The translations under genes and the position numbers were made by a program. From assembly GCA_039096225.1 (NCBI GenBank), contig JBBPEB010000024.1, positions 688,297 to 752,296 on the forward strand: 64,000 nt of DNA. Reading direction: 5' to 3'. Below, piece by piece: positions 3,065-64,000 of the stretch. How positions within the stretch are numbered: the stretch's first letter is position 1; every line of letters begins with the position of its first letter. The notes below the pieces were generated by a model. The model was not told the DNA's origin. It searched no databases and was given only the letters and a program-made list of their open reading frames with translations. Origin of the DNA: Blastocystis sp. Blastoise. Taxonomy: Eukaryota > Protista > Bigyra: Opalinata.

Positions 3065-3657
3065 AAATAAAATAATTATCAAAAAGTTTTTTTCTTCTTT
3101 TTTAAATCTTATTTTATTATTTGTTCTCTTAAATCTTTTTTATTCATATTAACGTATATGTCATTAATAGAATTTATATGTATACATATACAGTTCATAT
3201 ATATATTTTCTTTATTATATACTATATATTATTTATATCTATTGTTTTATGCAATATTTTCAATATTATTCTTATTAAAATGTATATTTTTCTGAATTAT
3301 TAACTTCACAAAGTAATAACTTTTTTTGTTATGATAATTATTTATTATATAATTTATTATTCATTCATATTAAAAATACATGAATTATAAATTGGATACA
3401 ACAATAAGGACATTAATATATTAAAATTTTATATTATTATATAAATTAACAAAAATGTTTAGATATCTTTTTTATGATACCAATGATATGTAGATTCTAT
3501 TATATATTTCACAACTACTAAACATATAAGAAACAACAACAAATAAAATTGATGATAAAAAGGTAATAAGTAAAAATACAAATATAAAAATATATATTTT
3601 CATAGTATCTCAAATAGACTCATTCATATAATAGAAAACAAATATATATATAATATA

Positions 3658-5386: not shown

Positions 5387-8300
5387 ATGAACTTGTTGCA
5401 ACATTGTGAATATGAATCTATGGTATTAGATTTCCTTTCTGTTGCAAATGAAAAATGGTTTAATCTAGAAATAGTAATTTTGTTATTAAACTATATGTAT
5501 CAAATCATAAACATAGTTTATGAATCAGGAAGCAAAGAAATATTATAATTTGAGAACATCAGGTTTACAATTTGAGAAAGAAATGAGTCCAACCAAGTTA
5601 TGTGATTATTATATAGATGAAGGAGATACTGTATACATCTGCAATACACGCGGATTACTTACAGAATCCATATTCTGCAAAAAGTGTTGGAATGAGTCGA
5701 AACATATTGTATACTAATGTTTTATAATATTAAATATATATTTAGGGTCATAATTATAAAATATCTGTATCTCCTGATAACAGTAGTTTCTGTGATTGTG
5801 GTAGTTTTTCTATTAAATCTGATTGTTTTTGTCAAAATCATAAAGAAATATATGATAGAAATAATTCATCAATATCAATAGAACCGTTGTAAGTTTTTTA
5901 TAGCTATATATATATTATATATATATAGAATGTTAGAATGGTATGAAACCTATTGTCATTTCTGTATATATACATTATTTTATTATACAAGAATTTCAAC
6001 AGAAGAATATCGGTTCAATGTATATATATATAATATACATATATATATTATGTATAATAAAATAATTTCATTTCAATTCTCTATCTATATATATATATAC
6101 AATATAGAAAGCAACATCAATAATAAATTCATTAATATTATTATGTGAATCAGATTTATCTATATATACATATATATGTACCTTCTTCTCTTCCTCTATA
6201 AAGAAACATAATTCTTTATTTAATAAGAAAATAGTCGATATTGATCGTTCATTTTTAACTCTTATTAATATAAAAGATCAAGCACCTTATATATGTATAT
6301 TATTTATTATGTGTTCTATGTGTGAAGATCAATTATATCAAGTATGTATACTTATTTATACTACTGTTTATATATATATAAGGTATATTATATATATATT
6401 TTTTTTTTTTTTTTTAAATATAAAAATTAATTATTTTTTTTAATCATTTATTTTTAAAAACTCCAAGCTTGTTGGGTTTTTTGAAGAATGACTTTTTTAA
6501 TTATTTTATTTTTATGTTTAATTATTTGTATTAAAAATAAATAATATAAAACAAAAATATTTCTAACAAAATATTATTATTATCTGAGATATTATTATTA
6601 TTATTATTATTATTATAGAAAGTATATGGTAATTTTTTATTATTGCTTTTTAAAGATCCATTATTTTGTAATGTTTGTTGTTCTCTTTATCCTATTATAT
6701 TATGGTATTCTTCTATCTGCTATTTACATTTTGATGGTATATATATATATATATTATTATTATGTTTATGTTTATCATTATTATGAATATTATTATCATT
6801 ATTATGAATATAAATTACATATTTCTTCTTTTATTGTACAAAACAAAATAATAATATATATATAACAATTTTTAAATATATATATAGATACTAAACTTCT
6901 TTTTGATTCATTATGGTCTCATCAAGCTTTATTCTTTATTATGTTTATTTCTTATAATAAATATAAGAGTTATATAAATATATTTTCAAATGATTCTATT
7001 TATTCAATTATTCATATTCCTCTGCTTCATGATATATCGAAATATATTGATAATAATAATAATAATAAACAATTATGGGAATCTGAGTTATTCCTATATG
7101 TCGTCTTTAATTTGATTAATATTACTTTGCTAAATCAATGTATATATATTGTTTATATATATATATATATATATACAGTAACTATTTTGTCTACGTATTT
7201 AATATTCATAATTATATTATATTTATACTTATATTTATATTTATATTAGATTTGAATAAAGAACACAAAAGATTACTTGTTGATTATTTATTAGGATTTA
7301 TCAATTATTATATAATAGATTACGAAGAAATATATTTTTTCATAAATACAAAAGAATTAATTCTTGATAAATATGCAACTAAAGCACTTGAATCTATTAA
7401 TGTATATATATTAATTATTATAAAGATTTATTAAAATATTATTAATTAACATCATTTATTATATATATAGTCTTTTATATCAAGTGACTGTATTTCTGAA
7501 GATATATCATTATTATATTATAGTCAAAATAACATTCAAAATCAATCGTCTTTATATGAAGTGATTAAAGCAATCATTTTTAATATATATAAAGAAATAC
7601 ATTCTTTTATACAAGTATATATATAAAATTCTGATTTATTATTATAAGAATTACTAATATTATTAATAATAATAAAATTATTAGAAATCAACAAAAGAAG
7701 AATCAGTTACTTTCTTAATGAATATCTTATCTACTTATAATAATAGATTATTTTTTGATATAGAAAGATGCTATAATATAAATAAATATAAAGAACATTT
7801 TTCAATTCATCTTTTTATTATCTTTGCTATTATTACTCTGTATATATATATTTTACTATAAATATTATATACATATATATATAGTTCCGAGATATATTCA
7901 AATTTTGGTATTTTCTCTTTACCATCAGATGCATCTATTTTCTTTCTTTTTATTTATCATATATCTTTAAGTCAATTTCTACGTGTGTTTCATATTCAGA
8001 ATCAATCAGATAATAATAATAATAATAATAATAATATAGATAATAATAATAATAATATAGATAATAATAATAATAATAATAATAATAGTTATGAACCAAT
8101 TTCTCATATATTTATAGATATAATAGAAAGTCATTTTCTATCTATTTCTGAATACTATGGAATGATTCTCCAAGTATGTAATTATTATACTTATTATATT
8201 TATTATATTATATTTATTATATTTATTTATTATATTTATTTATTATATTTATTATATTAAATTTATTATATTTATTATATTTATTATACCATATTTATTA

Positions 8301-40141: not shown

Positions 40142-43100
40142 TTAATAATTTTCTTTATTTTGTTCATAATATTCTTCAATAGATAAAATCTTTAAGAAAT
40201 CAGGTTCTTCCTATATATATAAATATATATAAATATAATGAAAAAAATAAAATATAAAATAAAAAAAAAAAAAAGAAAGAAATAATAATAATAATAAAAA
40301 GCATTCCATAATCTTTTTATAACCTAAAGCAAACTCAATAGCACATTTAACATTAGTAATAAGAGGAACACTGAAATCAACAGCACAACGTCTCATCTTA
40401 TAACCATCTGTTATAGCATCAGAATTACCATTAGGAACAATAATAGCAACATGAATTTGATTATTCTTTAAAGCATCAATAGCTAAATGATCTTTATGTT
40501 GAGTACTATTCTTATGAACTAATACAATTTGATTAGCAGGTAAATTCATTTGTTCTAAACGAGCATAAGTACCTTCTGTAGCATATATAACACAATTATG
40601 TTGAATTAAGAATTCAATAGATTCTTTAAATTGATCAAATTCTTTAGGAGGAATAGAAACTAATATATTTCTACCTTCTTTAGAACCAAATTTAGGGAAT
40701 GTAAATTTAAAGTTAGTAGATAAAAGAGCTTTAATAAAAGCTTCAGAAGGATCATTACCATAACAAGCAACTTCACCAGTAGAAGCCATTTCAACACCAA
40801 GTGTAGGATCTGCACCTTGTAATCTAGTAAATGAAAACATAGGAGCTTTACAACAAACATAATTAAGATCTTTTAATACAATAGAACCACGACGATGAGG
40901 TAAATGTACCATAACACGTGTAGCTAATTCAATAAAATTAAAATCAAATGTTTTAGACATAAAAGGGAATGTACGAGAAGCTCTTAAATTACATTCAATA
41001 ATTTTAATAGCATTATTTTTAGCTAACATTTGAATATTAAAAGGACCAGAAATACGTAATTTAGCAGCAATCTTTGAAGCAATAATTTTAACTCTACGTT
41101 CAGTTTCACTATATAATCTTTGAGAAGGTAATAATAAAGTAGCATCACCAGAATGAACACCAGCATTTTCTACATGTTCAGAAATAGCATAATTTAATAT
41201 TTCACCTTCTTCAGCAACAGCATCAAATTCAATTTCTTTAGCACCTTCAAAATATTTAGATAAAACAACAGGATAATCTGAAGATATTTCAGCAGCACGA
41301 CTAAGACATTTAATTAAAGAATTTTCATCATAAGCAACAGACATAGCAGCACCTGATAATACAAAAGAAGGACGTACTAAAACAGGATAAGGAGCAGAAC
41401 GACCAAATTCAAGTGCTTTTTCATTAGAAGTAACACTAACCCAAGCAGGTTGATCAATCTTTAATTCATCTAACATATTACTAAATTGAGAACGATCTTC
41501 AGCTTTTTCAATCATATAAGGAGAAGTACCAAATATATTAACACCATATTTACATAAAGGTAAAGCAAGATTATTAGCAATTTGACCACCAACAGAAACA
41601 ATAACACCTTCAGATTGTTCTAATTCATAAATATCTAAAACACGTTCTAAAGAAAGTTCTTCAAAATATAAACGATCACATTCATCATAATCAGTAGAAA
41701 CAGTTTCAGGATTAAAATTAATAATAATAGTATTCTTTTGAGCAGAACGTAAAGCACGAACACAACTAACAGCAGCATAATCAAATTCTACAGAACTACC
41801 AATAGAATAAGGACCACAACCTAATACTATAATACCATGATCATCAAATTCAACATCATTTTCATAACCAGAATAAGTAAGATATAAATAATTTGTATGA
41901 GCAGGGAATTCAGCAGCTAAAGTATCTACTTGTTTTACTACAGGTAAAACATTTAATGATTTTCTATATTCACGAACTAATAATTCTTCTTTAAGATGTT
42001 TAGGATTGTCTATATTATCAAAATGAACATGAGTAGCAATTTGTTTATCAGCAAAACCTAATACTTTAAGTATTTTCATAGAATCACGATCAATCTCAGT
42101 TAAATGTTTATTTTGAATAAGCATAGTAGCATTAGCAATATTATTTAATTTATTTAAAAACCATTTATCAATCTTTGTTAAATCATGTATTTCTTGAACA
42201 GTCATTCCATTCATTAAACCATAAGCAATAGCATATATTCTACGATCATCAGGTTCAGTTAATAAATGATGAAGAAGTTCTTTAATATCATTTTTAGGTG
42301 CTTCAAAACCATTAACTAAAGGATTAACCATACGTAATGCTTTTTGAATAGCTTCTTCAAAATTACGACCAATAGCCATAACTTCACCAACTGATTTCAT
42401 ACAAGAACCTAAAGTAGGTGATACTTTATGGAATTTCTTAAGATCCCAACGAGGTACTTTAACTACACAATAATCAAGAGAAGGTTCAAAACAAGCAGAA
42501 GTTGTATGTGTAATACTATTTTGAATTTGAATTAAATTCTTACCTAAAGCTAATTTAGCAGCAACATAAGCAAGAGGATAACCAGTAGCTTTAGAAGCTA
42601 AAGCAGATGAACGAGAAAGACGAGCATTAACTTCAATAATACAATAATCTTCACTTTCAGGATTTAAAGCATATTGAACATTACATTCACCAATAATACC
42701 TAAATGACGTACTACACGAATAGCAGTATCTCTTAATTTCATATATTCACTATTTGTTAATGTTTGTGAAGGGGCTACTACAATAGAATCACCAGTATGA
42801 ATACCTAAAGGATCAAAATTTTCCATATTACAAACAGTAATACAATTATCAAAACTATCTCTTACGACTTCATATTCTATTTCTTTCCAACCTCTTAAAT
42901 CTTTATCAATTAAAATTTGTTTGGAACCAGAAAAAGCTTTTTGAGCTAAATCTAATAAAGACTCATCATCTTTAGCAAATCCTGAACCTAATCCACCTAA
43001 AGCAAAAGCAGATCTTATCAATACAGGATAACCAATACGATGAGCTACTTCTAAAGCTTCATCTAAAGTTAAAGCAGGAGCAGATAAAGCTAATTTTTCA

Positions 43101-45231
43101 TTAATTTCTATTAATTTTTCTTTAAATAATTCACGATCTTCAGTATCAATAACAGTTTGAATAGGAGTACCTAATACTTGAATATTATATTTTTCTAATG
43201 TTTTAGATTGATATAATTCAATACCAACATTTAATGCAGTTTGACCACCCATAGATACTAAAATAGCATTAGGACGTTCTTTTTCTATTACTTTACATAC
43301 AAAATCAAAAGTAACAGGTAAGAAGTATACTTTAGAAGCTAATCCTTTTCCTGTTTGTACAGTAGCAATATTAGGATTCATAAGAATAACTTCCATATGT
43401 TCTTCTTTTAAAGCTTTAATAGCTTGAGAACCAGAATAATCAAATTCACCAGCTTGACCAATAGAAAGACCACCAGAACCAAGAATAAGAACTTTCTTAA
43501 ATTGTGGTGGTTTAAAGAAATTTACATTAAAAGTATTAGCAGGAGTATGTATACCTTTAATCATATCTAAGAAACGATCAAATAAAAATCTAGTATCAAT
43601 AGGACCAGCACAAGCTTCAGGATGGAATTGACTTGAGAAGAATGGTTTTGATTTATGGAAAATACCTTCATTAGTACTATCATTAACATTAAAGAATAAA
43701 GGAGCCCATCCTTCAGGAAGAGAACTAGCAACAACTTGGAAACCATGATTTTGAGAAGTAATATAACAACGAGCACTAGATAAATCAACACAAGGAACAT
43801 TACAAGCACGATTACCAAAAGGCATCTTTTCAGTACGAGCACCTGCAGCAAGAGCTAAAAGTTGATTACCTAAACAAATACCAAATATAGGTTTAGGTTG
43901 ATCTCTAGAAATAGCATATTTTAAACTTTCAATAGTATCTTTACACATCATTGGATCACCAGGACCATTCGAAATAAATAAACCATCATAAGTATCTTCA
44001 GCTTGTTTAATATCATAATTAAAAGGAACAACAGTAAGTTGAACACCTCTTTCTAAGAAACAACGTATAATATTATATTTCATACCACAATCATAAGCAA
44101 GAATACGAGGATAACCACCTTTATTATATACTTTAATTTCTTTAGTAGATACTTGTTCAACAAGATTATTTAAATTAGGATCAAATATATCAACATGTTC
44201 ATGTTCAAATTCTATCTTACCTAACATTACACCATGTTCACGAATCTTCTTAGTAAGCATACGAGTATCAATACCATATAATGCAGGAACATGAGAAGAC
44301 TATATAAATATATATATTTAAATATAAAAAATCTAACTAAGAATAAGAATGACTATAATATATATATATATTATTTTTAAAAATATTTATATAAATATTT
44401 AAAAAAATAAAATATAAAAAAATAAAGCATTCTATTCTACTCAAAGACTTTTAAATGTCAAGGAGAATTACTCAAAACGAGTGTTTCATTATGACAATAA
44501 TTAATCTTCCAAAACCGTAACAGATTCTCAAGGTTATAAAATACAATAAGAATCCTGACTTGGGTTTGGATATTTTTTTAAAATTTTAATATTGTTATTA
44601 ATATTAATTTTTAGAATTAATAATAAATATATATATATTTTATAAAATAAATATAAAATTATAATTATAACAGATATATATACTTTTAACCAATCAGAAA
44701 GAGAACGTTTAGCATTCCAATGACTATATTCCCAAGAATAATCAGAAACAATAACACCTGAAACATGAATTTTATCAGATTCAAAGAATTTAGGAATACC
44801 ATATTCATCAACTTCATCAAAACTAGGTACACCATAATTACCAATCATAGGGAAAGTAAATGTTAAAATTTGTCCTTCATAGGATGGATCAGTAAGAGAT
44901 TCAGGATAACCACACATAGCAGTATTGAAAACTACTTCACCACTTACAGAGGATTCATAACCAAAAGAAAAACTAAATATAAATAAAATATAAAAATGAA
45001 AACAAAACTATTAAAATCAATAAAATTAACTTTATTATAATAGAATATAGATATAAATATATATACCCTTCAAATACTGAACCATCTTCTAAGACAAGTT
45101 TAGCAATAGTATTATGTTTACCTAATTTTGTTTCTCCAAAAGGTTTATATACTATAGAAACACAGTAAGTAACTTGTCAATGAAGTTATAGGATGAGGGC
45201 CTTTACTAAACATACATTTAGGGGCTTCCAT
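40142..45231 (-). CDS. CPSII: Glutamine-dependent carbamoyl-phosphate synthetase II (fused small and large subunit, no DHOase/ATCase)
   Basis: Motifs [71 protein letters not shown] and a C-terminal MGS-like domain. Last short exon [25 protein letters not shown]. Confidence 0.95.
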
Positions 45232-50543: not shown

Positions 50544-50566
50544 AGCTCCATACGCGATTCGAACCC
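50544..50566 (-). other. Isolated 3' fragment of a tRNA gene (T-loop, 3' T-stem, 3' acceptor strand) followed by an oligo-T tract
   Basis: Minus strand GGGTTCGAATCGCGTATGGAGCT then ATTTTTTTTTTTT. No matching 5' half found. Confidence 0.6.
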
Positions 50567-50655
50567 TTTAAATATGTTATACAAAAAAATGGCGTATTTT
50601 TGTTTTAATTTTTCGTTAACTCTTCTCGTTAATTGATAACATAATTACATTTTTT

Positions 50656-52962
50656 TTAAGAAATTAGAATGTATGCTGCCTTTTTTATAGGACTAACAAC
50701 AGTATTTTGAGATGAAATAGACATTTTTAGATATAAAAACAAGTATTTATTTTGCGTTGTATCAAGATGAATTAGAGTTGGAAAAAAATGAAAAATTAGT
50801 TCATTAGAAGATAAATTATAATAGATGTTTTGATTCTGTATTTCATTTATATCATGTGCTTGTTTTAGACTATGAAAAGTGGAATTATAGATGGAGAAAA
50901 GGAGAAAAAAAGAAATAGGAGGAGAAAAAATACTAATTGTAGAAACATTAGCATATATGAGTACAGAAGGAGTAGTAGATATAGTATTATTTGTATTTGT
51001 TATATTTTCATCTTGTTCATCTTGTATGTAATTAGCAGTAGTATCCTTAGTAGTAATTCTCTTTTCTATAGTAATATTATCTGAATTTGTTTTTTCATTT
51101 GTAGGAGCTCTAATATTTCTATGTTTATTGTTATATATGTTTCTTAAGGTAGGTAATAAATAGAATAAAGTATTATTACTGAATTGAAGGAATAACATGG
51201 AGAATGATTTTTGGCGGGTGATTTTCTTAGGAATTCTAGGCCTATTTTTTCTTTTCTCGTAGATAAACATTAAAGTGAAGTGATTTATAAATTCCTTTAA
51301 GGATTCTATATTATTCCATTTCTTTCCATTTTTATGTTTTTTTATTGTGTTATAACCAATTAGAAATTCAGGTTTTGCCGGGAAAAGCCAATTAAATTTA
51401 GTAGGAAAATCTTTAGGAGGAGAAGTAATAGTATATATATTAGTAGGAAGAGAAAGAGTAAATTCATTATTTTCAATAGTATTTAGTATAGTTTCATTTG
51501 TAGGAATCTCATTTTCATCTATTATATCATTAGGAGTAAGTATAGGTATTTCTATATTAGAATCAGAATTCATATATATATCTTGATCCTCTTGTTCGGT
51601 ATTATTTAAATTGAGAGAAATAGGTTCATCTTCAGAGGATAGAGAAGAGTTAGTTTGTATAGGAGGATACATAGTTTCATTTCCAATGGGAGTATTATTT
51701 GTAATTGTAGCAGTATTTATTGTAGTAGTATTTGAAGATGTAGATAAAGAAGGAGATAGTTCTAGTGTAGGATTTCTTGCCCAAGAAGGAGGATTCGTAT
51801 CATTTGGGAATATTCTATTGTGTAGTAATTGACTAAGTGTAGGAGTAGGAGGAGAATCAGAAGATTCTGGAGAATTTGAGGATTCACTAGGAGTATTTTC
51901 GTTCATAGAGTTATCAATATTGTTTTCATTCAATTCCATATTTATATTACTTTTTTGTATCTCAGCATCCATTTTATCATTCCCATCAACTACTGTTGTA
52001 TCAATATTGATTACATTGTTTTCTTCAGTATTCATCAATACATCTTTCATTTCATTTTCATTTCGTATTTCTTTACTTTGAGAGGAATTAGGAGTAATTT
52101 CTTGTAGATTCTGAGTCGTTTCATTCATAGAGGGATTCATAGTAGTTTCATTCATAGTATCAGATTCATCTAAGGGTATTGTAGTAGTTTCATCATTCGT
52201 AGTACCAAAGTTCGTAGAGAATGTAGAAGTAGGTTTCATAGTATTTCGAGGATCATCATAATCAATCCAAATATTAATATCAGTAGACCAAGAGCTTTGC
52301 ACAGAGTAGTTCGAGGACCATGAAGTTTTAGTAGAGGAGAAATTCCAATCATTCTTTTTCATAGTATCATCATTTTTCATAGATAGAGAGTTTACAGCAT
52401 CCTTTGTAGACATAGTAGGTTCAACAAGTTCATCACCATCTTTCTTCTTTCTTAAACTCATAAAATCAGTACATACAGGAGACATCTTTCTCTTTTTCGC
52501 AAGTGTAGAAGTTTCAATGTAGAAGACTTCAGTTTCTAGAGGTATAGGACTGTTCTGGTTGTGTAGAGGTAGTGTAGTTGTAGAGATAGATGTAGAAGAA
52601 GAAATATCCTTTTCAGGATTATTTTTGGGTTGTAAATAACCGTTATTATTTGGTGGATCTTTCAAAGTAATAGAAGAACCACGGGAGGCTTCGGAATTTC
52701 CTGGGATTTCACATCCGGAGAAATTCTCTTTTTCCTGAATTGGAAGACCATTCTCAGCATATTTTATTTGTTTTTGATTTTTTGAAGCCCCAAGGAATTC
52801 TTGAGTATTTCCACCATCACTAATCATCTTATCATCTTCTCTAGCACACACAGAAGAAGAAACGGAAGAATTCTGACCTTTATCAACTGATTGTAAAAGA
52901 TCATGTTGGAGTTTTGACTCCGGAACAGAAGCATTGTCGTTTATTTGGATTGCTGATTGCAT
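50656..52962 (-). CDS. Orphan intronless low-complexity (S/T/N/P-rich) ORF, probably element-encoded
   Basis: Open for 790 codons. First ATG gives MQSAIQ at 52962. No introns or TA tracts, unlike host genes. Possible NLS KKRK. Basic, aromatic segment near the C-terminus. Confidence 0.55.
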   Translation of the reverse strand: MQSAIQINDNASVPESKLQHDLLQSVDKGQNSSVSSSVCAREDDKMISDGGNTQEFLGASKNQKQIKYAENGLPIQEKENFSGCEIPGNSEASRGSSITLKDPPNNNGYLQPKNNPEKDISSSTSISTTTLPLHNQNSPIPLETEVFYIETSTLAKKRKMSPVCTDFMSLRKKKDGDELVEPTMSTKDAVNSLSMKNDDTMKKNDWNFSSTKTSWSSNYSVQSSWSTDINIWIDYDDPRNTMKPTSTFSTNFGTTNDETTTIPLDESDTMNETTMNPSMNETTQNLQEITPNSSQSKEIRNENEMKDVLMNTEENNVINIDTTVVDGNDKMDAEIQKSNINMELNENNIDNSMNENTPSESSNSPESSDSPPTPTLSQLLHNRIFPNDTNPPSWARNPTLELSPSLSTSSNTTTINTATITNNTPIGNETMYPPIQTNSSLSSEDEPISLNLNNTEQEDQDIYMNSDSNIEIPILTPNDIIDENEIPTNETILNTIENNEFTLSLPTNIYTITSPPKDFPTKFNWLFPAKPEFLIGYNTIKKHKNGKKWNNIESLKEFINHFTLMFIYEKRKNRPRIPKKITRQKSFSMLFLQFSNNTLFYLLPTLRNIYNNKHRNIRAPTNEKTNSDNITIEKRITTKDTTANYIQDEQDENITNTNNTISTTPSVLIYANVSTISIFSPPISFFLLFSIYNSTFHSLKQAHDINEIQNQNIYYNLSSNELIFHFFPTLIHLDTTQNKYLFLYLKMSISSQNTVVSPIKKAAYILIS

Positions 52963-52991
52963 TAGGATATAAAAAAATGTAAAAAAGAAAT

Positions 52992-53015
52992 CGCCTGATA
53001 GGGGGATCGAACCCC
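52992..53015 (-). other. Isolated 3' fragment of a tRNA gene (resembles a tRNA-Lys 3' end) followed by T-runs
   Basis: Minus strand GGGG-TTCGATC-CCCCT-ATCAGGC-G then ATTTCTTTTTT. The expected 5' strand GCCTGAT is absent upstream. Confidence 0.65.
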
Positions 53016-56000
53016 AAGTGTTAGCCAATTAAAGTAACCATTTGTACCAGAGAGAACGGTACACAAACAGAAAAAGAACATAAAAAATTAAAATAAATTT
53101 AAAATATCATTTAATAACATTTGTTCATTTTGTTTTGTTTAAGTATGTTTTACCGCGGGGATATCACAACACATGTATTTCATATGCACCTTAAAATAAC
53201 CAATAGGACTCTCTGAATGGGATTTGTGTACTGATACCAGATCTAGTAACACAATTTTTACACCTCCCAAGCATTTCTGGGATATAGCTGATGTATAGGT
53301 ACAATATACCTTTCATATCACGACTATATATATAATTTAATTAATTTAATTCATATTGAAGGTTAATAAGTAATAGAATAATTTTTTAAGTAATAATTTT
53401 AAGATAAGAGTTTAATAAATAGTAAATAAGAGAAAAAGAGAAAATTCAATCTATAAATATATAGATATTCAAAAAAGAGCTGATTATAAATAAAATCAGT
53501 ATAAATAAGTTTTAATTAAATAAAATTAGAATAAGATATAAAGAAACAATTTCAATAAAAAGATATATATATAAAATAGTAAATTATAAAATAAAATAAA
53601 TATAATATATCCAATATAATATATAGAGGATAGGGAGTAGATATATATAGTAAGTATAATATAAAGTAGAATTATTAATATAATATCCATTGTAATATGT
53701 AGAGGATAAGTAGTAGATAAATTTCATCAATATAGTATAAGTAGTAGTAGTATATTCAATATAGTATATGGAGGATGAATAGAAGTATTATAGAGGATAA
53801 TTAGTAGTATATATTATTCCATATAGTAATATATATTATTCCATATTTCGTTGAGTTAATTCAATATGAGAAGCAGAAGAATGTAGTCTAGAAATATTTT
53901 TTGTAATTAGTCTAGAATCAGGAAGAGATAGTCTCCAATATTTATAAGCCCATTCTAAGACTATATCATTAATTTTTGATATTAAAAAGTATAAGTATCT
54001 TCCTTTGAGTTTTGAGACTTGAGATATATTATGAATAGTAGATTCAGGAATTGTCCCAGAGGCACCAAGAATAACAGTATAGTAGGAGATTTGTTTATTA
54101 GGGAAATCATGTTGTAATTTTTGTATAGCTTCATAATATGAATGATCTTTAGTATGTTTCATTTCTAAGAGAGTATCACGAGTTCCATCTACTTGTTCAT
54201 AAGTAACACCAATTTCTACCATTCTTATTTCTTTCTCACTTGTAATTATAATATCAGGACGACGATTAGCCCATTGTTCTTTATTCTTACCATCATATAG
54301 AATAGTATTCATTGATTTTTCTTGATTGACTTTAAAAATAGTATAAGGAAGAGTTTTTGCCAAAGATCTAGCTAAACATTCTCGTATTTCATTATGTCTT
54401 TTGCTAATCAGATCGTGTCCATTTTCATTTCTAGAAATTCTAGCACAAGTAGTCATGATGTGGGTTTGACTATGTATTCTTGATTCATTTTTAGTTTTCA
54501 AACAATAAGGACATAAAGCGACAGTATCCTGTAGAGTAGGTTTCTTTCCTTTTGGATTTTGTCTTCTATAAGCCATCTCACCAGTATATAGGGTTCTCAT
54601 TCGAAGATTCAATAAGGCACAGTATTTTGAAGGATTAATATGTTTTGTTTTGTATATCCATTTATTACACGATATATTATTATTTAAGTATTTAGTATAT
54701 TGCAAATAGGAGTATTCTTTCAGCATAGAAGCATGTCTTATTTTCAAAGATTCATTTAATAATTTGCACATTTTACGTTTCACATCTTTCGCTTCTATAA
54801 ATTTCGATATACTATTATCAGTACTTCTTATTCTTATTCCAGCTCCATTTTTCGGATTATTTTCATAGTAACATATGTCCATGTTTAACGCAACTATAGC
54901 ATCAATAGCTTTTCTTATATAAGGGAAGGGATGGTTCAGTGTTGTAAAGTCTATATCTAAAGGAATAACAGTATCATTTTCTTTCTTTGCTTTTAAGGGT
55001 TTGCTAATATTGTTGATAGATAGATTAAAGAATACCAAATCTTTCTTTCTATTTTCAGGGATTCCAGTAGGAATGTGGCCTCTCATATAGTTTATTGGAT
55101 CATTAATCACGTATAGAGAATTTTGTAGAGTAGTATATCTAAGAGCATAATATAAAGTATTTCTAATATTTATATCATTTGAATTAGCTATTCTTACCAG
55201 TAGAGAAGCTTTACCAATATAATACCTATCTAACAACGAAGTAACACCAAGTCCACCATCTCGTATTGAAGTGCTATAAAAGTCTTTAGGCCAGACAGAA
55301 GAACATCCATTCCAATTCTTAACATTATTTCTTATTAGTACATCCAGTTCTTTTATTTTAAGTATATTAGTATCACCATTTCTAGCCAAGAATTCAATAC
55401 AAGGAATAATATATTGACGAAGAGTTATTAATTTTTGATGAGGACTAATAGGAATTGTGTTCAATGAATTTATTTTTTCTTTGATTTCATCTAACGTATT
55501 CACCCAGAATTCTCTTCGTTTAGTAATTGATTCACCCATAGGACATCCTAAATATCTTTGAATTTCAGTATCTTTAAGTAGAGTAATCACTTCATTATTA
55601 TAAGTAGGAGGAGGAGGAGTATAAGTAAGTTTTCTATTTCCATCATTGGAGTATTTCATCGCTAAACACTTACATTTATTAACCGATAGTTTCATATGAT
55701 ATATATTAAGTATTTCTTTTACCTTTCCTAAAAGAACTTCCGTATCTTCTTTATTGTTAGCTAGCAGGACGATATCATCTGCATAAGCATAAGCATTACT
55801 TTCTGATATAACAATAGGATTATTAGGAGTAGTGTTATCTTTAATATTCATCATCATTGCTTGATTATTGTTCAGGTAATTCAATAAAGGATTAAGTATG
55901 ATATTGAATAGAAGAGGAGATAGGGGATCACCTTGTCTTATTCCACGCTTTAAGTATATAGGATCCGTATATGAATTTTTGGTTAATCTTATAACAGTAT

Positions 56001-57945
56001 TAGCAGAAGAGTATAAGGATAGAATAATATTTCTGAAGTCTATAGGGAAGTTCATATATTGAAGAATTTGATGCATTAATCTTTGAGGTACCGTATCATA
56101 AGCCTTCTCCAAGTCAAGGAAAGTAAAATAGGCAGCAGTTTTAGCTCTTCTAGATAGTTTAAAGTTAGCTATGTAGTTTTGTAGTATGAAATTAAGTTCT
56201 TCACAACCAGGTATTCCAGATATAAATCCTTTTTGATATTTTGACATAAAGTTTTGTTTATTGTTTAGTTCATTCATGTAAGTAACCATTATAGAAGAAA
56301 GTATTTTTGATTCAGTATTTTGTAAAGCCAAAGGTCTCCAGTTTCCTAAGCTACTAGGATCCGATTTATTTTTGTCTAGTAGGCAAGTGATAGAGGAACT
56401 CCAAGATTTTAGAGTAATACCATTCGAACGACATATTTCTAATATATAAGCCAATAGAGAACAAGCAGAAGAGGAGTATTTGTATACTTCATAAGGGAGA
56501 CCATTAGGACCAGGAGTACTGTTATTTGGTAAAAATTTTAATGCGTGTTTAATTCTTTCATAGGTTATCTTATTAAGGGCAGGAGGATTTAGTAATTGTT
56601 TAGTATTTGATTTTATAATATCTGGAAGTAATATATTATCTAAAGTTTCTTGTGAATCATATAGTTTCGTAAATTGTTCTTGTAAATCCTTAGAAGGTAT
56701 TTCACAATATCTAGGAGTAGTTTTAGAGAATACTTTACTTCTTAAGAAAGCTTTAGTATTCTTATCAAATTCAGATTGTATTTTCTTAGCATCATTAATA
56801 GAAGTAATTCTTATTTTAGCTTCTTTGAGTTGGTTAATATTCCATAAGCATGATTCTATCTCATTCATAATAAGATTTAATATCTCTTTCCATTGTTCTA
56901 GAGTAAGTAGAGAAGTATTATTGTTTTCATTATCTTTCTGTAAGATATTTAATATATTTATTTTTAATTCTTCATCTTCATCAAAGAGTGTAATAGATTG
57001 TAGTTTATTTTTCCAATTAAGGATAGACTCAGAAAGAGTAGAAGAGATAGTATAGGATTCAGTTTCAGGAATATTAGGTATTATAGTGTGATTCAAATCG
57101 TATTTTAGAGTATCTAGATTACTTTTAAGATTATTATAGTATTTCTTTAAAGCTTCAATTTCATTATCCGTAGATTTTCTGAAAGGATTATTATCAAAGA
57201 AATCATCATTCGTTTGTTTGAAATTATTATTCATATGTATAGTGTTCGTATTATTAGTAGGAGTAGTAGTAGTAGGAGGAGGAGAGGTAGTAGAAGTAGT
57301 AACATTAGTAGAGGGAGTAGTACCATTTATAGTAGTAGATCGATTAGTAGTAGTAGTATTATTGTTATTAGTAGAAGGACTTAAATCCATATAGTTCTTA
57401 TATTTATTATTCTTTTTATATTTATTTTTATTACTATAATTGTTTATAGGATGATTATAATTATTATTTCTTCTATTATATCTATGTTGATTATAATCAT
57501 GATTATTTCCAGGAATATTTTGAGTATCATATCGATTTTGAGTATTCCCGTGATTATTTTGAGAAATATCATGCGTATCCATATCATCCATATTATTAGT
57601 AGTATTCTGAAGATTATTAGGAGTAGAATCAATATGACTTCGATTTTGACCATAACCGCGATTATTTTGAGAAATCATTACTATATATATGAGAATAGGC
57701 AAAAAAATTCCCATTGGTCAGTTTTTGGAGAATGCATTTGATTGGCTACTATATACTATAGTTTGTCGCCGCAACTCCTCTAAACTTACGGGGAATTAAC
57801 TTTTGAGTGAAACACAGTTTAATAGGATATAACGTGTAGTTGTGCACCGTATATTTAGTTAAGCGATATTATTTATAATTAAAAAGTTATTAATAAAAGA
57901 ACAGAAAACATGATTTTTGAGTCGTTTTTGATTGGCTCTTTGGGG
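53016..57945 (-). mobile_element. Non-LTR retrotransposon of the RLE (R2/R4/NeSL-type) group; boundaries approximate
   Basis: Single long RT-RLE ORF. AT-rich repetitive and hairpin-rich 3' region ending at a tRNA fragment. 5' limit uncertain. Confidence 0.7.
53836..57714 (-). CDS. Reverse transcriptase + CCHC zinc knuckle + restriction-like endonuclease polyprotein
   Basis: RT motifs STPGPNGL, NWRPLAL, QKGF, FLDLEKAYDTV, GIRQGDPLSPLLFN, YAYADD, RYLG, GGLG. Knuckle CPYC..THIMTTC. Endonuclease RHNEI and RPDIII..EIGVT..K. Uninterrupted 1292 aa. Confidence 0.95.
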   Translation of the reverse strand: MGIFLPILIYIVMISQNNRGYGQNRSHIDSTPNNLQNTTNNMDDMDTHDISQNNHGNTQNRYDTQNIPGNNHDYNQHRYNRRNNNYNHPINNYSNKNKYKKNNKYKNYMDLSPSTNNNNTTTTNRSTTINGTTPSTNVTTSTTSPPPTTTTPTNNTNTIHMNNNFKQTNDDFFDNNPFRKSTDNEIEALKKYYNNLKSNLDTLKYDLNHTIIPNIPETESYTISSTLSESILNWKNKLQSITLFDEDEELKINILNILQKDNENNNTSLLTLEQWKEILNLIMNEIESCLWNINQLKEAKIRITSINDAKKIQSEFDKNTKAFLRSKVFSKTTPRYCEIPSKDLQEQFTKLYDSQETLDNILLPDIIKSNTKQLLNPPALNKITYERIKHALKFLPNNSTPGPNGLPYEVYKYSSSACSLLAYILEICRSNGITLKSWSSSITCLLDKNKSDPSSLGNWRPLALQNTESKILSSIMVTYMNELNNKQNFMSKYQKGFISGIPGCEELNFILQNYIANFKLSRRAKTAAYFTFLDLEKAYDTVPQRLMHQILQYMNFPIDFRNIILSLYSSANTVIRLTKNSYTDPIYLKRGIRQGDPLSPLLFNIILNPLLNYLNNNQAMMMNIKDNTTPNNPIVISESNAYAYADDIVLLANNKEDTEVLLGKVKEILNIYHMKLSVNKCKCLAMKYSNDGNRKLTYTPPPPTYNNEVITLLKDTEIQRYLGCPMGESITKRREFWVNTLDEIKEKINSLNTIPISPHQKLITLRQYIIPCIEFLARNGDTNILKIKELDVLIRNNVKNWNGCSSVWPKDFYSTSIRDGGLGVTSLLDRYYIGKASLLVRIANSNDINIRNTLYYALRYTTLQNSLYVINDPINYMRGHIPTGIPENRKKDLVFFNLSINNISKPLKAKKENDTVIPLDIDFTTLNHPFPYIRKAIDAIVALNMDICYYENNPKNGAGIRIRSTDNSISKFIEAKDVKRKMCKLLNESLKIRHASMLKEYSYLQYTKYLNNNISCNKWIYKTKHINPSKYCALLNLRMRTLYTGEMAYRRQNPKGKKPTLQDTVALCPYCLKTKNESRIHSQTHIMTTCARISRNENGHDLISKRHNEIRECLARSLAKTLPYTIFKVNQEKSMNTILYDGKNKEQWANRRPDIIITSEKEIRMVEIGVTYEQVDGTRDTLLEMKHTKDHSYYEAIQKLQHDFPNKQISYYTVILGASGTIPESTIHNISQVSKLKGRYLYFLISKINDIVLEWAYKYWRLSLPDSRLITKNISRLHSSASHIELTQRNME

Positions 57946-58269
57946 TGACCCCGATAAAAATTGTTGACCAGACAATTGGAAAATAAACATGGGGTAAACT
58001 TGATTTTTTCTCAATCCCACAATATACGTTATCCGTGTTTATTCTTTATATTTATCTACTTTTTAATACTTTTTCATATTGAACACGTGAGGCCATAACG
58101 GTCAAATTTAGATTCTCAATTTGACATCATATTCTGATTCAGGAGGTCAGAAAACCTAGGTGTACCAATTTTGAGCTCCTGAGGACGATTTTTGAGTGAT
58201 CGATATTTTCTTCGATCTTCTTATAATCGACTAATATTACAGCGTTGTAATCAATAGGTCATCAAACTA

Positions 58270-59600
58270 CTATAGTAGAAACAGAGTCTTAAAATAACAA
58301 GTTTGAGTGTCACAATTTTGAAAAATGTGAATTAAGTGGTCTTAGAGTGAGAGATTCAATATAATGACTTTTAATTAGTAAACTAGACTTATAACTCTAT
58401 ACTATGTTAAAAGAAGAGTCAAAATTATGAAGGTCAAAGTGTATGACCAAATGACAAAATGTGTCTTAAAAAGTAAAATGGTTTCTATATGTGTATAGAA
58501 TCATATATTAAGTCTATTTTATGAATAATAGCTTTAAATAAATAGTTTAAGGTTGTCAAATTTAAAAGAATGTATAAAACATAGTCTTAAACTATGAATA
58601 AAAAATTTAGAGATATTAATTAGTGTACAGCTGTAGTAGCTCTACAACATATCAAAAGTACAGTTAAAATAATTTTTAAAGAGTGGATGTGTGAAGGGTT
58701 GTGACTATTATTTAAAATTTATTTTTACTTCAGTTTGAGCAAAATTGTGAATTTCGTGCACTATAAAAAAATTGAGTCAGAATATCAACTCTAAGGGTCT
58801 TAAATTTAAAAAAACGTAAAAATGAGTGACTTAGAGGACGAGATTCAAAATAAGAGCTTTTATTCATTAAACTAGAGTGTATGACCTATATTATGTTAAA
58901 AGAAGGGACGAAAATATGTTGATCAAAGTGTATGACCAAATGGTAAAGTGTCTTTAAAAGTGTTATGATGATGACAGTTGTGTTTACATGTCTGAATCAA
59001 GTTTATTCTTAAAATATTAGCTTTAAATAGCAAGTTAAAGGTTGTCAATTTGTCAAAATGTTTTAAAGACTATCTTAAACAAAGAGATTCAAGAAGTTGA
59101 CTTTCATTTTATATATTATATGTCTATATAAACACTTTACTAAAAGAACTTTGGAAAATATTGTGGATGAGTGTTTTGTCAAATGGTAAAGTTGTATCAA
59201 GAGTGAATTGTTTCCATTCCTTTTTGTTTAAATCAATGTTTTATGTCCACTCTATAAAAACTATCTTTTAATACTGAGTTTAACGTTTTAAAGTCAACAT
59301 GTGTGTTTGGTTTGCTTACTTTTGAGAGTTGAAAATCAGTTTAAATTGATAAATTATGTCATAGACGTCTATATTAATTGATTCAAACAGTTTTGAGATG
59401 ACTTAGTTGTTTGAGTTAAAATGGATTTGTTCTCATTGTGACTGTTGTTGAGAAGAGGAAGTCTAAAAAAACTATAAACAGTTAGATATATGTATATAAT
59501 GTCAAAATTTAAAAGGTATAATCTAAAAGAGATAAAAATAAGTTTAAAAAAAGAGAAAATATATATATATATATAATATGTAAAAAATATTAAAGAAAAA
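58270..59600. repeat. Degenerate tandem repeat with ~244-bp monomer and 489-bp higher-order period
   Basis: GAGATTCAA at 58351, 58840 and 59084. CAAAGTGTATGACCAAATG at 58435 and 58924. TAGCTTTAAATA and AAGGTTGTCAA also recur 489 bp apart. Confidence 0.75.
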
Positions 59601-59610
59601 GAAAAATAAG

Positions 59611-59678
59611 ACTTCATGTCAGGAATTGAACCTGAAAACAATCTATAATGATTGTTTCTCTCCTTCTAGAGCATAAAG
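59611..59678 (-). ncRNA. tRNA-like cloverleaf, copy A (non-canonical)
   Basis: CTTTATG / CTCT-AGAAGG-AGAG / AA / ACAATC-ATTATA-GATTGT / TT / TCAGG-TTCAATT-CCTGA / CATGAAG-T, followed by T-runs. Confidence 0.6.
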
Positions 59679-59700
59679 GGAGTTTATAAATAATAATAAT

Positions 59701-59750
<50 letters not shown>

Positions 59751-59802
59751 ATATATATATATATATATATATAGATATAGATATATATATAGATATATAA
59801 TA

Positions 59803-60260
59803 AGGAGGAAGTAGGAAGTAGGAAGTAGGAAGGAAGAAGGAAGAAGGAAGAAGGAAGGATGAAGAAGTAAGAAGGAAGGATGAAGAAGAAGGAAGAAAGA
59901 AGGATGAGGAAGAAGGAAGTAGGAAGAAGAAGGAAGAAAGAAGGATGAGGAAGAAGGAAGTAGGAAGAATCAAGGATGGGGAAGAAGAAAGAAGGAAGAA
60001 GGAAGGAGGAAGAAGAATGAAGAACCAAGGTGAAGAAGAAGGGAGAAGTAAGAAGTAAGTACGAAGAATGAAGGAAGAATGATGAAGAAGGAAGAAGGAG
60101 GAAGAAGTAAAGAATGAAAAGAAAGAAGGCAGAAAGAAGAAGGAAGAAGGAAGAAGGAAGAAGGAAGAAGAAGGAAGGAAGAAGAAGTAAGTAGGAAAGA
60201 TGAGGAAGAAGGAAGAAGTAAGAAGGAAGAAGAACGAAGATAGAAAGAAGAAAAAAAAAA
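59803..60260. repeat. Purine-rich (GAAG/GGAAGAA/GGAAGTA) simple repeat
   Basis: Direct reading. Source of the spurious F/L/S ORFs. Confidence 0.9.
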
Positions 60261-60339
60261 ACTAAGAAGAATATTAAACCTATATACAATAAATAAACAT
60301 AATAAATAAATAAATAAATAAATAAATAATAAACAATAA

Positions 60340-60370
<31 letters not shown>

Positions 60371-61232
60371 ATTAATAAATAAATAAACATATAAAAAAGA
60401 ATAAATAAATAATAAATAAATAAATAAATAATAAAAAAAATGTAAACAATAAATAATAAAAATAATAAATAAAATATAAATATATACCTTTAAAATAACC
60501 TTGAACGACAGATTAAAGAAGGAAAATATTTAGCAACGAAGACCACAACACATCCATTGAAGTTTCTTTCCTATAGAATAAAAATTATTAATAATATATA
60601 GAATAAATTATATGTAAAGACTAAATAAATAATATTGATAATAAAAATAATAAATAATAAAAACGAATTAACAAAAAGAAAAACAGATCTTAAGAAATAA
60701 ATAATATATTTATATACCTGATCATAAATAAACCATTTTACACAGCCAAGACCACTTCAAGAACACTTCAACACCACAACCAAGGAAAATACAAAACAAT
60801 CCTATAGAAAAGTGTATTATTTTAAATAAATAAATATATACATACAAATATATATAAAAATAATAACTAAACAATATCAAATAAATAAATAAAACATACT
60901 CAGTCAATCAATATAATTAAATATTTAAAAAATGTAAAAAACTATGTTTTTTGGGTACCCTAAATGTTTTTAATAGAAAATGACCCAATTATTACTTTTA
61001 GAAATAAATCAATAAAAACTCAAGGGTTTTTTAATTTCTATTAAGTTTTAAGAAGCATATTTTTAAAATAGACCCTATTCTTTAAAAGTAGAAATATAAA
61101 CACAATTTTTATATTAAGAGAAAACACTTATTTTTTATAATTAAATTGATATCTAAGATGCCTCAGAAGGCATGATGCTATCAAGATTGAAGTGTGTAGA
61201 TGGAAAAATATACTTTTTTTCAAAAATTTCAG

Positions 61233-62330
61233 GTTCTTCTACTCAATAGGATCCAGTTGTGTATGTTCTTAGTCTTGGTGTTACTTGCTCTGATGGTCTT
61301 AAAGGTATATATTTTCCATTTTCTTTTTTTTTTTTAATTATTTATTATATTATTTTAGGTTCTTCTATGTTATTTGTATCATACGGAGGCTGTGATATTG
61401 CCTGTTATGCTAACTGTGAAGGTTCTTCTGTTGTTTTAAATGATGCTAATGGTTCTAATGATGTGATTGTAGGTTCTTCTTATTTTATTGAAGGTATGTT
61501 GCCAATCATTTAATTTATTTTTATATTTTATTATTATTTTATTATTATTTCTATATATATATATAGGTTCTTCAGTTGCTGTGCATGTTGACAGTGGTGT
61601 TGATGATAGATGTCTGTGTGGTGTTGAAGGTTCTTCTGATGCTTTCAATACTGCTGTTGATGTTGTTGGTGATCAGATAGACTGTTCCTATGGTATTAAA
61701 GGTATATATATATATTGTCATTCATTTATTATTATTTTTTTTTATTTATTATTTGTCTATTACTGTTTCTTTATAGGTTCTTTTATTGTTGTGTGTGTGG
61801 TTGCTGAAGGTGTTAATAATTAAGGTATGTCTTTTTTTAATTTAATTTAGTTTATTTTTATTTATTATTTATATATAGGTCCTTCTATTCTGATCGAGTC
61901 TTCTATTATAGGTAATGAAAGGTATATACTTATTTCTTCCTTTCTTTTTTTTTAATTTATTAATTATCTTATCATTATATATAGGTTCTTCAAGTCAGTT
62001 ATGATATGATACTTATTTTTCTGTTCCTTCTTTAGAAGGGATATATATTTTTATTGTTTATATATTTTTTATTATTTATTATATATAGGTGTCTTTTCTA
62101 ATAGGGGATCTTATCACCCTAATGTTGGCTTTTATTTTAATAATAAAAATATATCTAAAGGTATATATATATATATATATATAACAAATATTTATATTTC
62201 TTTTAATATATATATCTATATATTTTATCTATATAGTGATGGTGTAAATAGTTCTTTAATGCTGAAGGTATATATATATATATTTATCTTTTATTTCTAT
62301 AGGTTCTTCTAATTTGGTTGGCATACTTAA
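61233..62330 (+). pseudogene. Multi-exon unit of repeated GSS-starting exons with in-frame stops (pseudogene or spliced ncRNA)
   Basis: About 8 exons bounded mostly by AG|GTTCTT and AAG|GTAT. TAG at 61247 and TAA at 61821 in the GSS frame, and one GG donor near 62039. Confidence 0.45.
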
Positions 62331-62699
62331 CATATTATTTTATTTTTGTTTTGTTTTGTTTTGCTTTGTTTATTATTATTATTTTTTTTTTTTCACAGAT
62401 AATATCTTTCTATTATCTGCTTTCTTAGTATTATTTATTTATTTTTGTTTTGTTCGTTTTTTATAATTTTTATTGTGCTTAATATTAAGATAATTTTGAA
62501 ATTAGTTAATGTTATTAGTATGTGGTCCTTAATATTGTTTTAATTTATAATAACATTCATTTATCACCTAATCTGATATAGACTAGCGATATAATTACAT
62601 CAATGATTGAGTTATTATTAAGTTTTGTATTCTCCACTTTCATTTATATATTTAATTATGTGTAAAATTGTAAGCAATAAGAAATGTGAAAAAATAGGT

Positions 62700-63726
62700 T
62701 ATTAAATTAAGAGATTTAAAATTATAGAAATTGTTTAATATAGAACAATATGTACTCTACAACATATTAAAAAATAAGAGAATTTCATTTTTGACAAGTG
62801 AATTAACAATGCGTTTGAGTTGTTCAGAAATTTTAAAGAGTTAGTCTATTCTTTTAAAATTGTGTTTTTGTTATACTATGAAAATTTTGACTTTTAAAAA
62901 CAAGTTTAAAGGGATTACTTTTTTAAAATGTAGAAATGAATTATCCAAAGGACGAGATTCAATATAAAACATTTTATTTATCAAACTATTATTTATAGTC
63001 TGAATTATATTAAAAGGAGGGACAAAAATACTCTTGACAAAGTGTATGACCAAATGAAAAATGTTTATAAAGAGTGTCAAAATGGTAGCTAATGTATTGG
63101 CAGAGTTATGTCGAGCATAGCGTTAAAATATAAGCTTTTTAAATTAACTATAAGTGTGTTAACTTTTCAAAATGTATAAAAAAGGGTCTTTAGGTCAGAG
63201 ATTCAAGACATTCAACTATAAGTAATATATGACATAATGAGATCTATATTGTGTGAAAGTTATGTCTAAAACTATTTTGATACACTGGATATCAAAATGG
63301 TGAAGTCTCTTTACAAGCGATATTGCTGACACTTTTATGTATAGAAATGCTTTTTAGAGTGACATTATTAATATTAATTCTAAAATTATGTGTTTAAGTC
63401 GTTAAAGTGAAAATGAATGTTGACTTTGTTGTGTTAGATTCGTTTTAGTTTTATGAAATGGTTAAAGAAAGTGTAAACTACCTTATTATAATCTATTTAA
63501 AATGATTTTACATAATAATGACTTTCAATACTTAACATTGTGACCCATTTCTAAATTTATTAGCTTTAGAAACTCCATAATAATTAAAGCAGTAACTCAA
63601 CTATTTATAAATACAAAATATATTTTTAAAATAATAAATAACAAATATAATGATTCAAAAACGATTTCTTATTTTTTTAAGTATTGTTTTTAGTTTTTCA
63701 GATACTATTCAAAAAATTCAATTTAA
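62700..63726. repeat. Diverged direct copy of 58590-59610
   Basis: Anchors GAGATTCAA (62954, 63198) and CAAAGTGTATGACCAAATG (63038) are each offset 4114 bp from the first copy; CTCTACAACATAT is at a similar offset. Confidence 0.75.
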
Positions 63727-63795
63727 TTCTTATATCAGGAATTGAACCTGATTATAATCAACAAATGATTATTACTCTCCATATAGAGTATAAGA
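63727..63795 (-). ncRNA. tRNA-like cloverleaf, copy B (non-canonical)
   Basis: TCTTATA / CTCT-ATATGG-AGAG / TA / ATAATC-ATTTGTT-GATTAT / AA / TCAGG-TTCAATT-CCTGA / TATAAGA-A, with T6 about 10 nt downstream. Confidence 0.6.
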
Positions 63796-63957
63796 AGTGT
63801 TAATAAAATAATATATATAATATATAATATATAATATATAATAAATAATAAGTAACATATTATAGATAATATTTAATAAATAATATATATTATATAATAT
63901 ATAGTAGATAATAAGGAAAGAAAGTGAATAAAAACAAAACACTTATTATTCATTGCA

Positions 63958-63994
63958 GCCGCGGTCCGGTGCCGTTAGGCCCCGGACCTGCGGC
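63958..63994. other. GC-rich stem-loop at the window edge
   Basis: GCCGC-GGTCCGG-T-GCC-GTTA-GGC-C-CCGGACC-T-GCGGC in an otherwise extremely AT-rich context. Confidence 0.7.
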
Positions 63995-64000
63995 GTGACC

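Follow-up and report, generated by a model that had tools for sequence, protein, structure and literature searches.

The final 64 kb of contig C23 of Blastocystis sp. Blastoise, from tortoise gut (C23:688297-752296; this whole stretch is hereafter called the window), raise the question of how a reverse transcriptase (RT) gene, a second long open reading frame (ORF), tandem repeats, spliced units and four tRNA-like pieces came to lie side by side next to the contig end. An initial annotation read them as one composite retroelement system, in which tRNA motifs would serve as promoters, boundaries, processing marks or integration sites. We found that the underlying observations are largely real, yet the single-system interpretation is unsupported except for one integration mark. 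Instead, the locus is very probably a nest of two independent mobile elements, a retrotransposon of tRNA-Lys genes and a Helitron, accompanied by one chance match to the tRNA B-box motif. Three distinct origins account for the four "tRNA modules", and both elements belong to known classes, neither being of a new kind.

Read on the minus strand, the sequence at 57674-51003 consists of parts of two head-to-tail units of an 8.6-kb element. Ten complete units were detected elsewhere, in arrays on contigs C10, C13, C14, C29 and C33 with a period of exactly 8591 bp; here and below, copy counts come from searches across one genome assembly of this single isolate (G000; 33.3 Mb, GC about 21%). The window, which has a GC content of ~20% and asparagine-rich ORFs, retains the 3' 4.7 kb of unit 1, a 35-bp copy of tRNA-Lys sequence and the first 2 kb of unit 2. 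Its RT copy shares 97–99% protein identity with the ten full units, the matches running from unit position 3971 on, and the segment 54232-51003 is 92% identical to the third unit of the C14 array. The window copy appears to be a member of an older, diverged subfamily. Full units encode a single ORF of about 2,568 aa (open frame about 2590 aa), of which the N-terminal half, ~1,300 aa, is of low complexity. The first ATG lies ~20 nt inside the element, leaving a 5' untranslated region (UTR) of ~20 nt, and no terminal repeats (long terminal repeats, LTRs) were found beyond the copy of the target. The second frame of the window, described earlier as an orphan ORF, does exist as a 790-aa frame at 53028..50656(-), but it is no orphan. 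Its TTG start falls within the tail of the preceding unit, the real ATG being at 52962, and it shows patchy matches to a C10 unit (positions 57-2068); the frame is the N-terminal part of the retrotransposon's own giant ORF in the next tandem unit.

The RT-bearing frame is intact (1292 aa, 57714..53836(-)) and, as had been recognized, joins an RT domain (Pfam RVT_1, E 2e-32) to a restriction-like endonuclease (RLE); its initial 13 codons are Helitron terminal sequence. Among solved proteins, the RT is most similar to those of R2 elements (E 1e-39 vs. 1e-21 for LINE-1 ORF2p), and a word search for RT relatives returned distant matches only, with identity not exceeding 30%. The C-terminus carries a CCHC knuckle followed by a PD-(D/E)xK restriction-like endonuclease, whose motifs CPYC..H..C, RHN, RPDI, E/D-x-G-x-x-YE and K..KDH are kept in a second family that is only 36% identical. 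The C-terminal 253 aa gave no match to solved structures by sequence alone. In turn, an AlphaFold2 (AF2) model of the last 293 residues, of moderate confidence (mean pLDDT 57, core 70–89), placed R2 proteins at the top of a Foldseek search (E 1.6e-8, TM 0.55), with PD-(D/E)xK-fold nucleases of the cap-snatching and restriction types next; these fold assignments are those of a predicted structure. Pfam detected no N-terminal exo/endonuclease-phosphatase domain of the apurinic endonuclease (APE) type, and in the full ORF the RT is the sole Pfam domain, with no recognizable N-terminal zinc finger or Myb. Taken together, sequence and modelled fold indicate an RLE-type (R2-like) non-LTR retrotransposon; for the RT, the comparison covered solved R2 and LINE-1 proteins.

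The site of insertion is the same throughout. Every array begins at a full tRNA-Lys(UUU) gene, as called by ARAGORN. The body of this tRNA occurs six times in the genome, all six genes scoring 64 bits with the Rfam tRNA model, and five of the six head an array. All ten full units, as well as the window junction, abut the T-stem boundary of tRNA-Lys(UUU): each unit ends with ...CTAACACTT, followed by the last 24 nt of tRNA-Lys and the TTTCTTTTTT terminator (11/11 junctions). The 24-mer, which spans the T-arm, the 3' strand of the acceptor stem and the discriminator, has 17 sites in the genome, namely the six full genes and 11 positions behind element ends. No array follows the sixth gene (C1:374804), an empty site whose downstream flank is the same as the one behind the C10 array. 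Comparison of C1:374804-374920 with C10:52380-52482 gives at least 45 nt of shared downstream flank. The two loci hence correspond to duplicates, or else to the haplotypes of a single locus, with an insertion in C10 and none in C1. On balance, an insertion adds the element and a 34-bp copy of the target, with the preceding tRNA gene left complete. From these junctions, the element appears to insert only into tRNA-Lys(UUU) genes and always co-oriented with them, and the tRNA piece at 53015-52981 is best read as a target-site duplication between two units. Thus, the suggestion that tRNA motifs act as integration sites was borne out for this piece, which is a true 3' copy of tRNA-Lys, but not for the others.

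Such junctions could arise by target-primed reverse transcription, initiated by a putative nick in the bottom strand where the T-stem begins. Cleavage of the top strand would follow ~34 bp downstream, immediately after the Pol III terminator, so that the last 24 nt of the tRNA and its terminator would be duplicated and a complete tRNA gene left ahead of the insert. A head gene regenerated in this manner could be hit again, which would stack units head to tail and push older ones away. In C14 and C29, it is the unit most distant from the head tRNA that is diverged (95–96% vs. 100% in the middle part), and this is the order expected from repeated insertion at the head.

The arrays might alternatively have grown by unequal crossing-over or segmental duplication of one insertion rather than by repeated retrotransposition. 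Units within an array can be near-identical (the two C10 units share 99.97% identity), and the flanks common to C1 and C10 imply that such loci do duplicate. Yet, the five occupied tRNA-Lys loci have different flanks, and in C14 and C29 the distal unit is of the diverged subfamily while the proximal ones are of the common type, which renders this explanation unlikely. Another possibility is that the 34-bp piece belongs to the element itself as a leader or tail of tRNA origin, and that insertion takes place between the variable loop and the T-stem without duplicating the target. Filled and empty sites are equally compatible with both interpretations, and ARAGORN at a threshold of 80% folds the last 50 nt of the element together with the tRNA-Lys piece as a "tRNA-Val". 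We rejected this tRNA-like 3' end as noise: ARAGORN also made a call for 28% of control upstream sequences joined to the same tRNA half (276/1000 shuffled, 290/1000 random). Moreover, the piece matches the target without any difference in 11/11 junctions and includes the terminator and flank, for which an RNA-derived tail would have no need. Early-branching RLE elements (SLACS/CZAR) typically generate long target duplications, which counts further against an element-borne piece, and we consider this origin of the 34 bp quite unlikely relative to target-site duplication.

The second mobile element starts where unit 1 breaks off. On the plus strand, the non-autonomous Helitron begins A|TCATTAC... 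at 57675, and the same 5' A|TC was seen in five other copies. Its terminal 645 bp (57676-58320) have at least 144 candidate copies of 95–100% identity. The copies examined align from 57673/4 to 59727-59821, all of them end at one base, and their flanks are unrelated. Further inside, 60830-63700 has at least 30 near-full-length copies (77–96% identity) and 60830-64000 at least 40 copies, and 63640-64000 is matched in full at ~37 places; these copies adjoin the same terminal segment (e.g., in C20). At C11:39311-40589, two of the terminal 645-bp segments exactly adjoin in opposite orientation with their 5' ends touching.

The window Helitron itself has no Rep/helicase gene and is, hence, non-autonomous; an autonomous relative was found in C14, where an 11.6-kb Helitron interrupts the third RT unit within its 3' UTR and lies antisense to it (C14:684.4-696.0 kb; L002, L024, L047). 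The last 673 bp of this copy are 95% identical to window 58347-57675, its other end displays a GC-rich hairpin followed by CTAG|T, and its single 1559-aa frame matches PIF1 (E 3e-35) and, at C14:687212-687781, Helitron_like_N (196 bits). Matches to the Helitron_like_N Rep number 51 genome-wide. When the 3' hairpins of the two elements are compared (63950-64000 vs. L002:5362-5420), the outer stem GCCGC/GCGGC and the loop (CCGTTAGG) are kept; the inner stems differ and are still complementary.

At the position of the break, intact RT units read GATA|TTTCTC, which points to insertion of the Helitron between A and T. From the junction alone, we infer that a Helitron of ~6.3 kb split a full unit 1. 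The contig stops at the Helitron 3' hairpin, so that the rest of unit 1 and the head tRNA gene would have stayed unassembled, and CTAG would be expected as the next four bases. It could be argued that unit 1 is instead an ordinary 5'-truncated insertion abutting the Helitron end, given that 5' truncation is common among non-LTR elements and that the missing half is absent from the assembly. However, the break coincides exactly with the conserved 5' terminus of the Helitron and with A|T of the unit, and a truncated insertion should follow a tRNA-Lys gene rather than a Helitron end, both of which make truncation very unlikely.

Several observations weigh against the account of two nested elements as given here. 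The CTAG of the window Helitron and its 3' flank fall beyond the contig end; neither the remaining half of unit 1 nor the tRNA-Lys gene at its head was found, unit positions 2100-3970 being present only in the ten full units of the assembly. The junctions fit a target duplication and a 34-bp end belonging to the element alike. The 5' boundary of the element is uncertain by ~11 nt, as ACATTTTTT recurs in the C14 and C29 array tails. Finally, the homology of unit 2 ends near 51003 (unit position ~2100) and gives way to single-copy DNA with no recognizable cause.

Two of the tRNA-like pieces, cloverleaves A and B, belong to the Helitron. They share a four-helix fold of 22 pairs, which is 100% paired across A, its C10 variant A' and B and in which the acceptor and D stems adjoin without linker nucleotides. 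Between A and B, four pairs are compensatory (three of them acceptor-stem pairs, the fourth a pair of the anticodon-like stem), against 0–1 in slid controls. The 16-nt T-arm of the cloverleaf recurs at 305 sites in the genome, whereas the reversed-pattern control has none. The folds described earlier do covary, but neither is a tRNA by ARAGORN defaults or Rfam. ARAGORN called B as tRNA-Gln(UUG) only at a threshold of 90%, and A at none of the thresholds tried. We conclude from these sequence features that the cloverleaves are conserved tRNA mimics of a Helitron family rather than tRNA genes. They may represent a putative RNase P/Z processing signal or a Pol III/TFIIIC site.

Other features ascribed to the composite system were confirmed as parts of the same Helitron family. 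Diverged repeats of ~244 bp trail both cloverleaves: in the direct-repeat families D5 and D6, copies of 66–77% identity are spaced by 244, 489 and 4114, and BLAST self-matches agree. GT-AG introns are likewise present, and on both strands; the exons of both spliced units were read singly from sequence. In the minus-strand unit, the polypyrimidine tract corresponds to a 450-bp array of a 7-nt unit at 59802-60252, AAGGAAG on the plus and (CTTCCTT)n on the minus strand (sequence reading, TRF), and a polypyrimidine arrangement upstream of the cloverleaf recurs in every Helitron copy examined. The plus-strand gene at 61264-62400 is built of small phase-1 exons, each beginning GGT TCT TC (Gly-Ser-Ser), with TGTTTTGTTTTG following the last exon.

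The distribution of B-box matches is consistent with this division. The exact motif GGTTCRANTCC occurs only at 59622 and 63738, within the cloverleaves (two observed vs. 0.04 expected for the window), and allowing one mismatch adds 53003 and 50555, with 1.28 expected per window. As had been noted, all four matches lie on the minus strand, like the 1292-aa and 790-aa frames, and the first 50 kb of the window have no match even at one mismatch. Three of the four are accounted for by the retrotransposon and the Helitron. With default settings ARAGORN found no tRNA gene in the window and neither did Rfam, whose tRNA model gave no match in the region even at E≤10. Judged by model detection, a 7-nt anticodon loop, linker nucleotides 8–9 and a variable region, none of A, B and fragments 1 and 2 is a canonical tRNA. 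The remaining match, fragment 2, had been taken for a second tRNA 3' piece, which could not be upheld. No second copy was found in the genome, there was no fold signal (z +0.33) and ARAGORN made no call even at a threshold of 80%. We also considered a relic of a target tRNA and rejected it: the nearest pattern match has two mismatches and lies elsewhere, the sequence is unfolded, and it is placed 440 bp past the end of the unit homology. As a single leftover match fits the ~1.3 expected per window, we treated fragment 2 as, most likely, a chance B-box match.

What speaks for one composite system is that all four motifs and both ORFs are found on the same strand and within 13 kb, the rest of the window having none, and that the C14 Helitron, with the same cloverleaf, also sits inside an RT unit, again antisense. 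The shared strand is explained by the retroelement being always co-oriented with the tRNA and by this Helitron happening to lie antisense. A survey of RT copies for co-occurrence, named beforehand as the test, found complete units without cloverleaf or 244-bp neighbours, bar one C14 case. A composite system is extremely improbable, since 9/10 full RT units have neither a cloverleaf nor a 244-bp repeat nearby, the two Helitron insertions fall at different unit positions (3971 vs. about 7821-7889), the T-arm 16-mer recurs at its 305 sites in a repeat whose C14 relative has its own Rep/helicase gene, and, by our own estimate, random insertion would place ~0.6 Helitrons in the 103 kb of RT-element DNA, against two seen; the cloverleaves, repeats and spliced units belong to a separate Helitron family. 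The coordinates of all features are listed in Table 1.

Table 1. Features of the retrotransposon–Helitron locus in the window (positions are those of the window).
Feature	Position	Strand	Description
Non-autonomous Helitron	57675-64000	+	5' TC after host A; 3' GC-rich hairpin at 63950-64000 abuts contig end
Cloverleaf B	63796-63726	-	AT-rich tRNA-shaped fold; antisense to Helitron
Multi-exon gene	61264-62400	+	On Helitron sense strand; signal-peptide-like first exon, hydrophobic C-terminal exon
Spliced unit	60822-59705	-	GT-AG exons 60822-60500, AT-rich spacer, polypyrimidine tract, (AT)n run, then cloverleaf A
Cloverleaf A	59678-59611	-	68 nt; no acceptor/D-stem linker; 6-nt "anticodon" loop
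~244-bp tandem repeats	59300-58300	-	Downstream of A; related block at 62925-63100 downstream of B
RT-RLE part of unit 1	57674-53836	-	Unit position 3971 to stop codon; 5' side cut by Helitron
3' UTR of unit 1	53835-53016	-	22–76-bp tandem repeats (TRF); ends ...CTAACACTT
tRNA-Lys 3' copy (fragment 1)	53015-52981	-	T-arm to T-rich terminator; 35 bp with one extra A; 34 bp elsewhere
Unit 2, 5' part	52980-51003	-	ATG at 52962; low-complexity N-terminal region of single ORF
Fragment 2	50565-50530	-	One-mismatch B-box then T12, in single-copy DNA

The architecture, which had not been recognized from described RLE elements, is not new for them. Families specific for tRNA genes have already been described, namely NeSL-1_TV of Trichomonas (tRNA-Pro) and, in planaria, LIN15_SM (tRNA-Arg) and LIN25_SM (tRNA-Glu) (PMC4640811). 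Like these, the Blastocystis element encodes an RT followed by a CCHC knuckle and RLE, and uses one tRNA gene family as a multicopy target. It differs from them in its stramenopile host, its tRNA-Lys(UUU) target and its single ORF of ~2,568 aa, as well as in the 34-bp duplication that keeps the tRNA intact and the head-to-tail arrays at five of the six genes. R2 (28S rDNA; 8GH6, 9NL2, 9DOU) provides the best match in both RT sequence and modelled endonuclease fold and also occupies a multicopy RNA gene. Yet, its target is 28S rDNA rather than a tRNA gene, its insertions are accompanied by small deletions or duplications instead of a long duplication, and the 5' UTR of ~20 nt sets the Blastocystis element further apart. 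No HDV-like ribozyme, as present in R2, was detected in the latter by Rfam.

Two further groups of retrotransposons invite comparison. SLACS, CZAR and CRE are trypanosomatid RLE elements that are specific for spliced-leader genes and generate a long (tens of bp) target duplication. The likeness consists in a small multicopy RNA gene as the target and in the long duplication; target, host and ORF organization are different. The Dictyostelium TRE5 and TRE3 elements also reside beside tRNA genes in a compact AT-rich genome and leave these genes undestroyed. They possess an endonuclease of the APE type and, by recognizing Pol III factors, integrate some distance away from whichever tRNA gene is targeted, in contrast to the Blastocystis element, which would cut within one specific tRNA sequence.

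The second element conforms to Helitrons, including DINE-1 and HINE, in its 5' TC, the GC hairpin (which precedes CTAG at the 3' end of the C14 relative), the apparent A|T insertion site, the internal tandem repeats and the gene-like cargo, and its autonomous relative has the Rep and Pif1 helicase of Helitrons. Unlike them, it has a covarying tRNA-shaped fold, present twice and antisense to the element; no description of such a fold in Helitrons was found in the literature searched. The cloverleaves resemble mascRNA (MALAT1/NEAT1) in being a tRNA-shaped non-decoding fold downstream of a long, probably non-coding unit. They are different in that they have no sequence relationship to mascRNA, are carried by transposons and are known here from sequence alone.

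A second RT-RLE family, with 42% protein identity to the window element, was noted at C15:722-750 kb, C4:2408-2422 kb, C23:74385-78089 and C23:268628-272440 (L012-L020). Its copies, which share 96–98% identity, form tandem arrays with a ~10-kb period, and their open frames reach 2,787 aa. One of them, L017, breaks beside a GGTTAAATCCC motif, and other copies run past that point; among the Rfam matches listed, there was no tRNA gene near the arrays of this family. We considered the family as a candidate source of fragment 2 and as a candidate tRNA-targeting relative.

Elsewhere in the window, a carbamoyl-phosphate synthase gene is intact at 40211-44260(-), with GATase, two ATP-grasp halves and MGS; the deposited model has 1476 aa, which implies that an upstream exon is present. 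The small contigs C9 (16-26894) and C12 (4721-19013) encode many high-scoring tRNA genes in mirrored order and are probably two copies or orientations of the genome of the mitochondrion-related organelle (MRO).

For the tortoise isolates, transposon content has been reported in bulk only, with families unnamed (PMC12129017), and no detailed account of any Blastocystis transposable-element family appears to exist in the literature searched. The locus illustrates that a striking layout can arise via nested insertions, and what looked like a new architecture becomes two tractable objects. One of them, the cloverleaf, is a conserved structured module of about 300 copies. The other, the retrotransposon, is a natural example of an element that would cut inside an essential gene and yet rebuild it, with five of six copies filled and none destroyed. 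R2-like enzymes currently attract interest as tools for site-specific insertion, and the empty/filled pair and the ordered subfamilies are useful for studying how such enzymes pick their targets.

It is also conceivable, although we hold it to be rather doubtful, that both elements exploit the host tRNA machinery in as yet undescribed ways. The cloverleaves would then be selected mascRNA-like signals, at which a putative RNase P/Z cut would end the antisense spliced polypyrimidine transcript or trim read-through RNA. The retrotransposon, in turn, would obtain its mRNA via read-through from the tRNA side, putatively freed by tRNA 3' processing; this reading rests on the ATG that lies ~20 nt behind the regenerated tRNA terminator. 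If true, the release of the retrotransposon mRNA would parallel, by analogy, the co-transcription of R2 with rRNA and its liberation by ribozyme cleavage.

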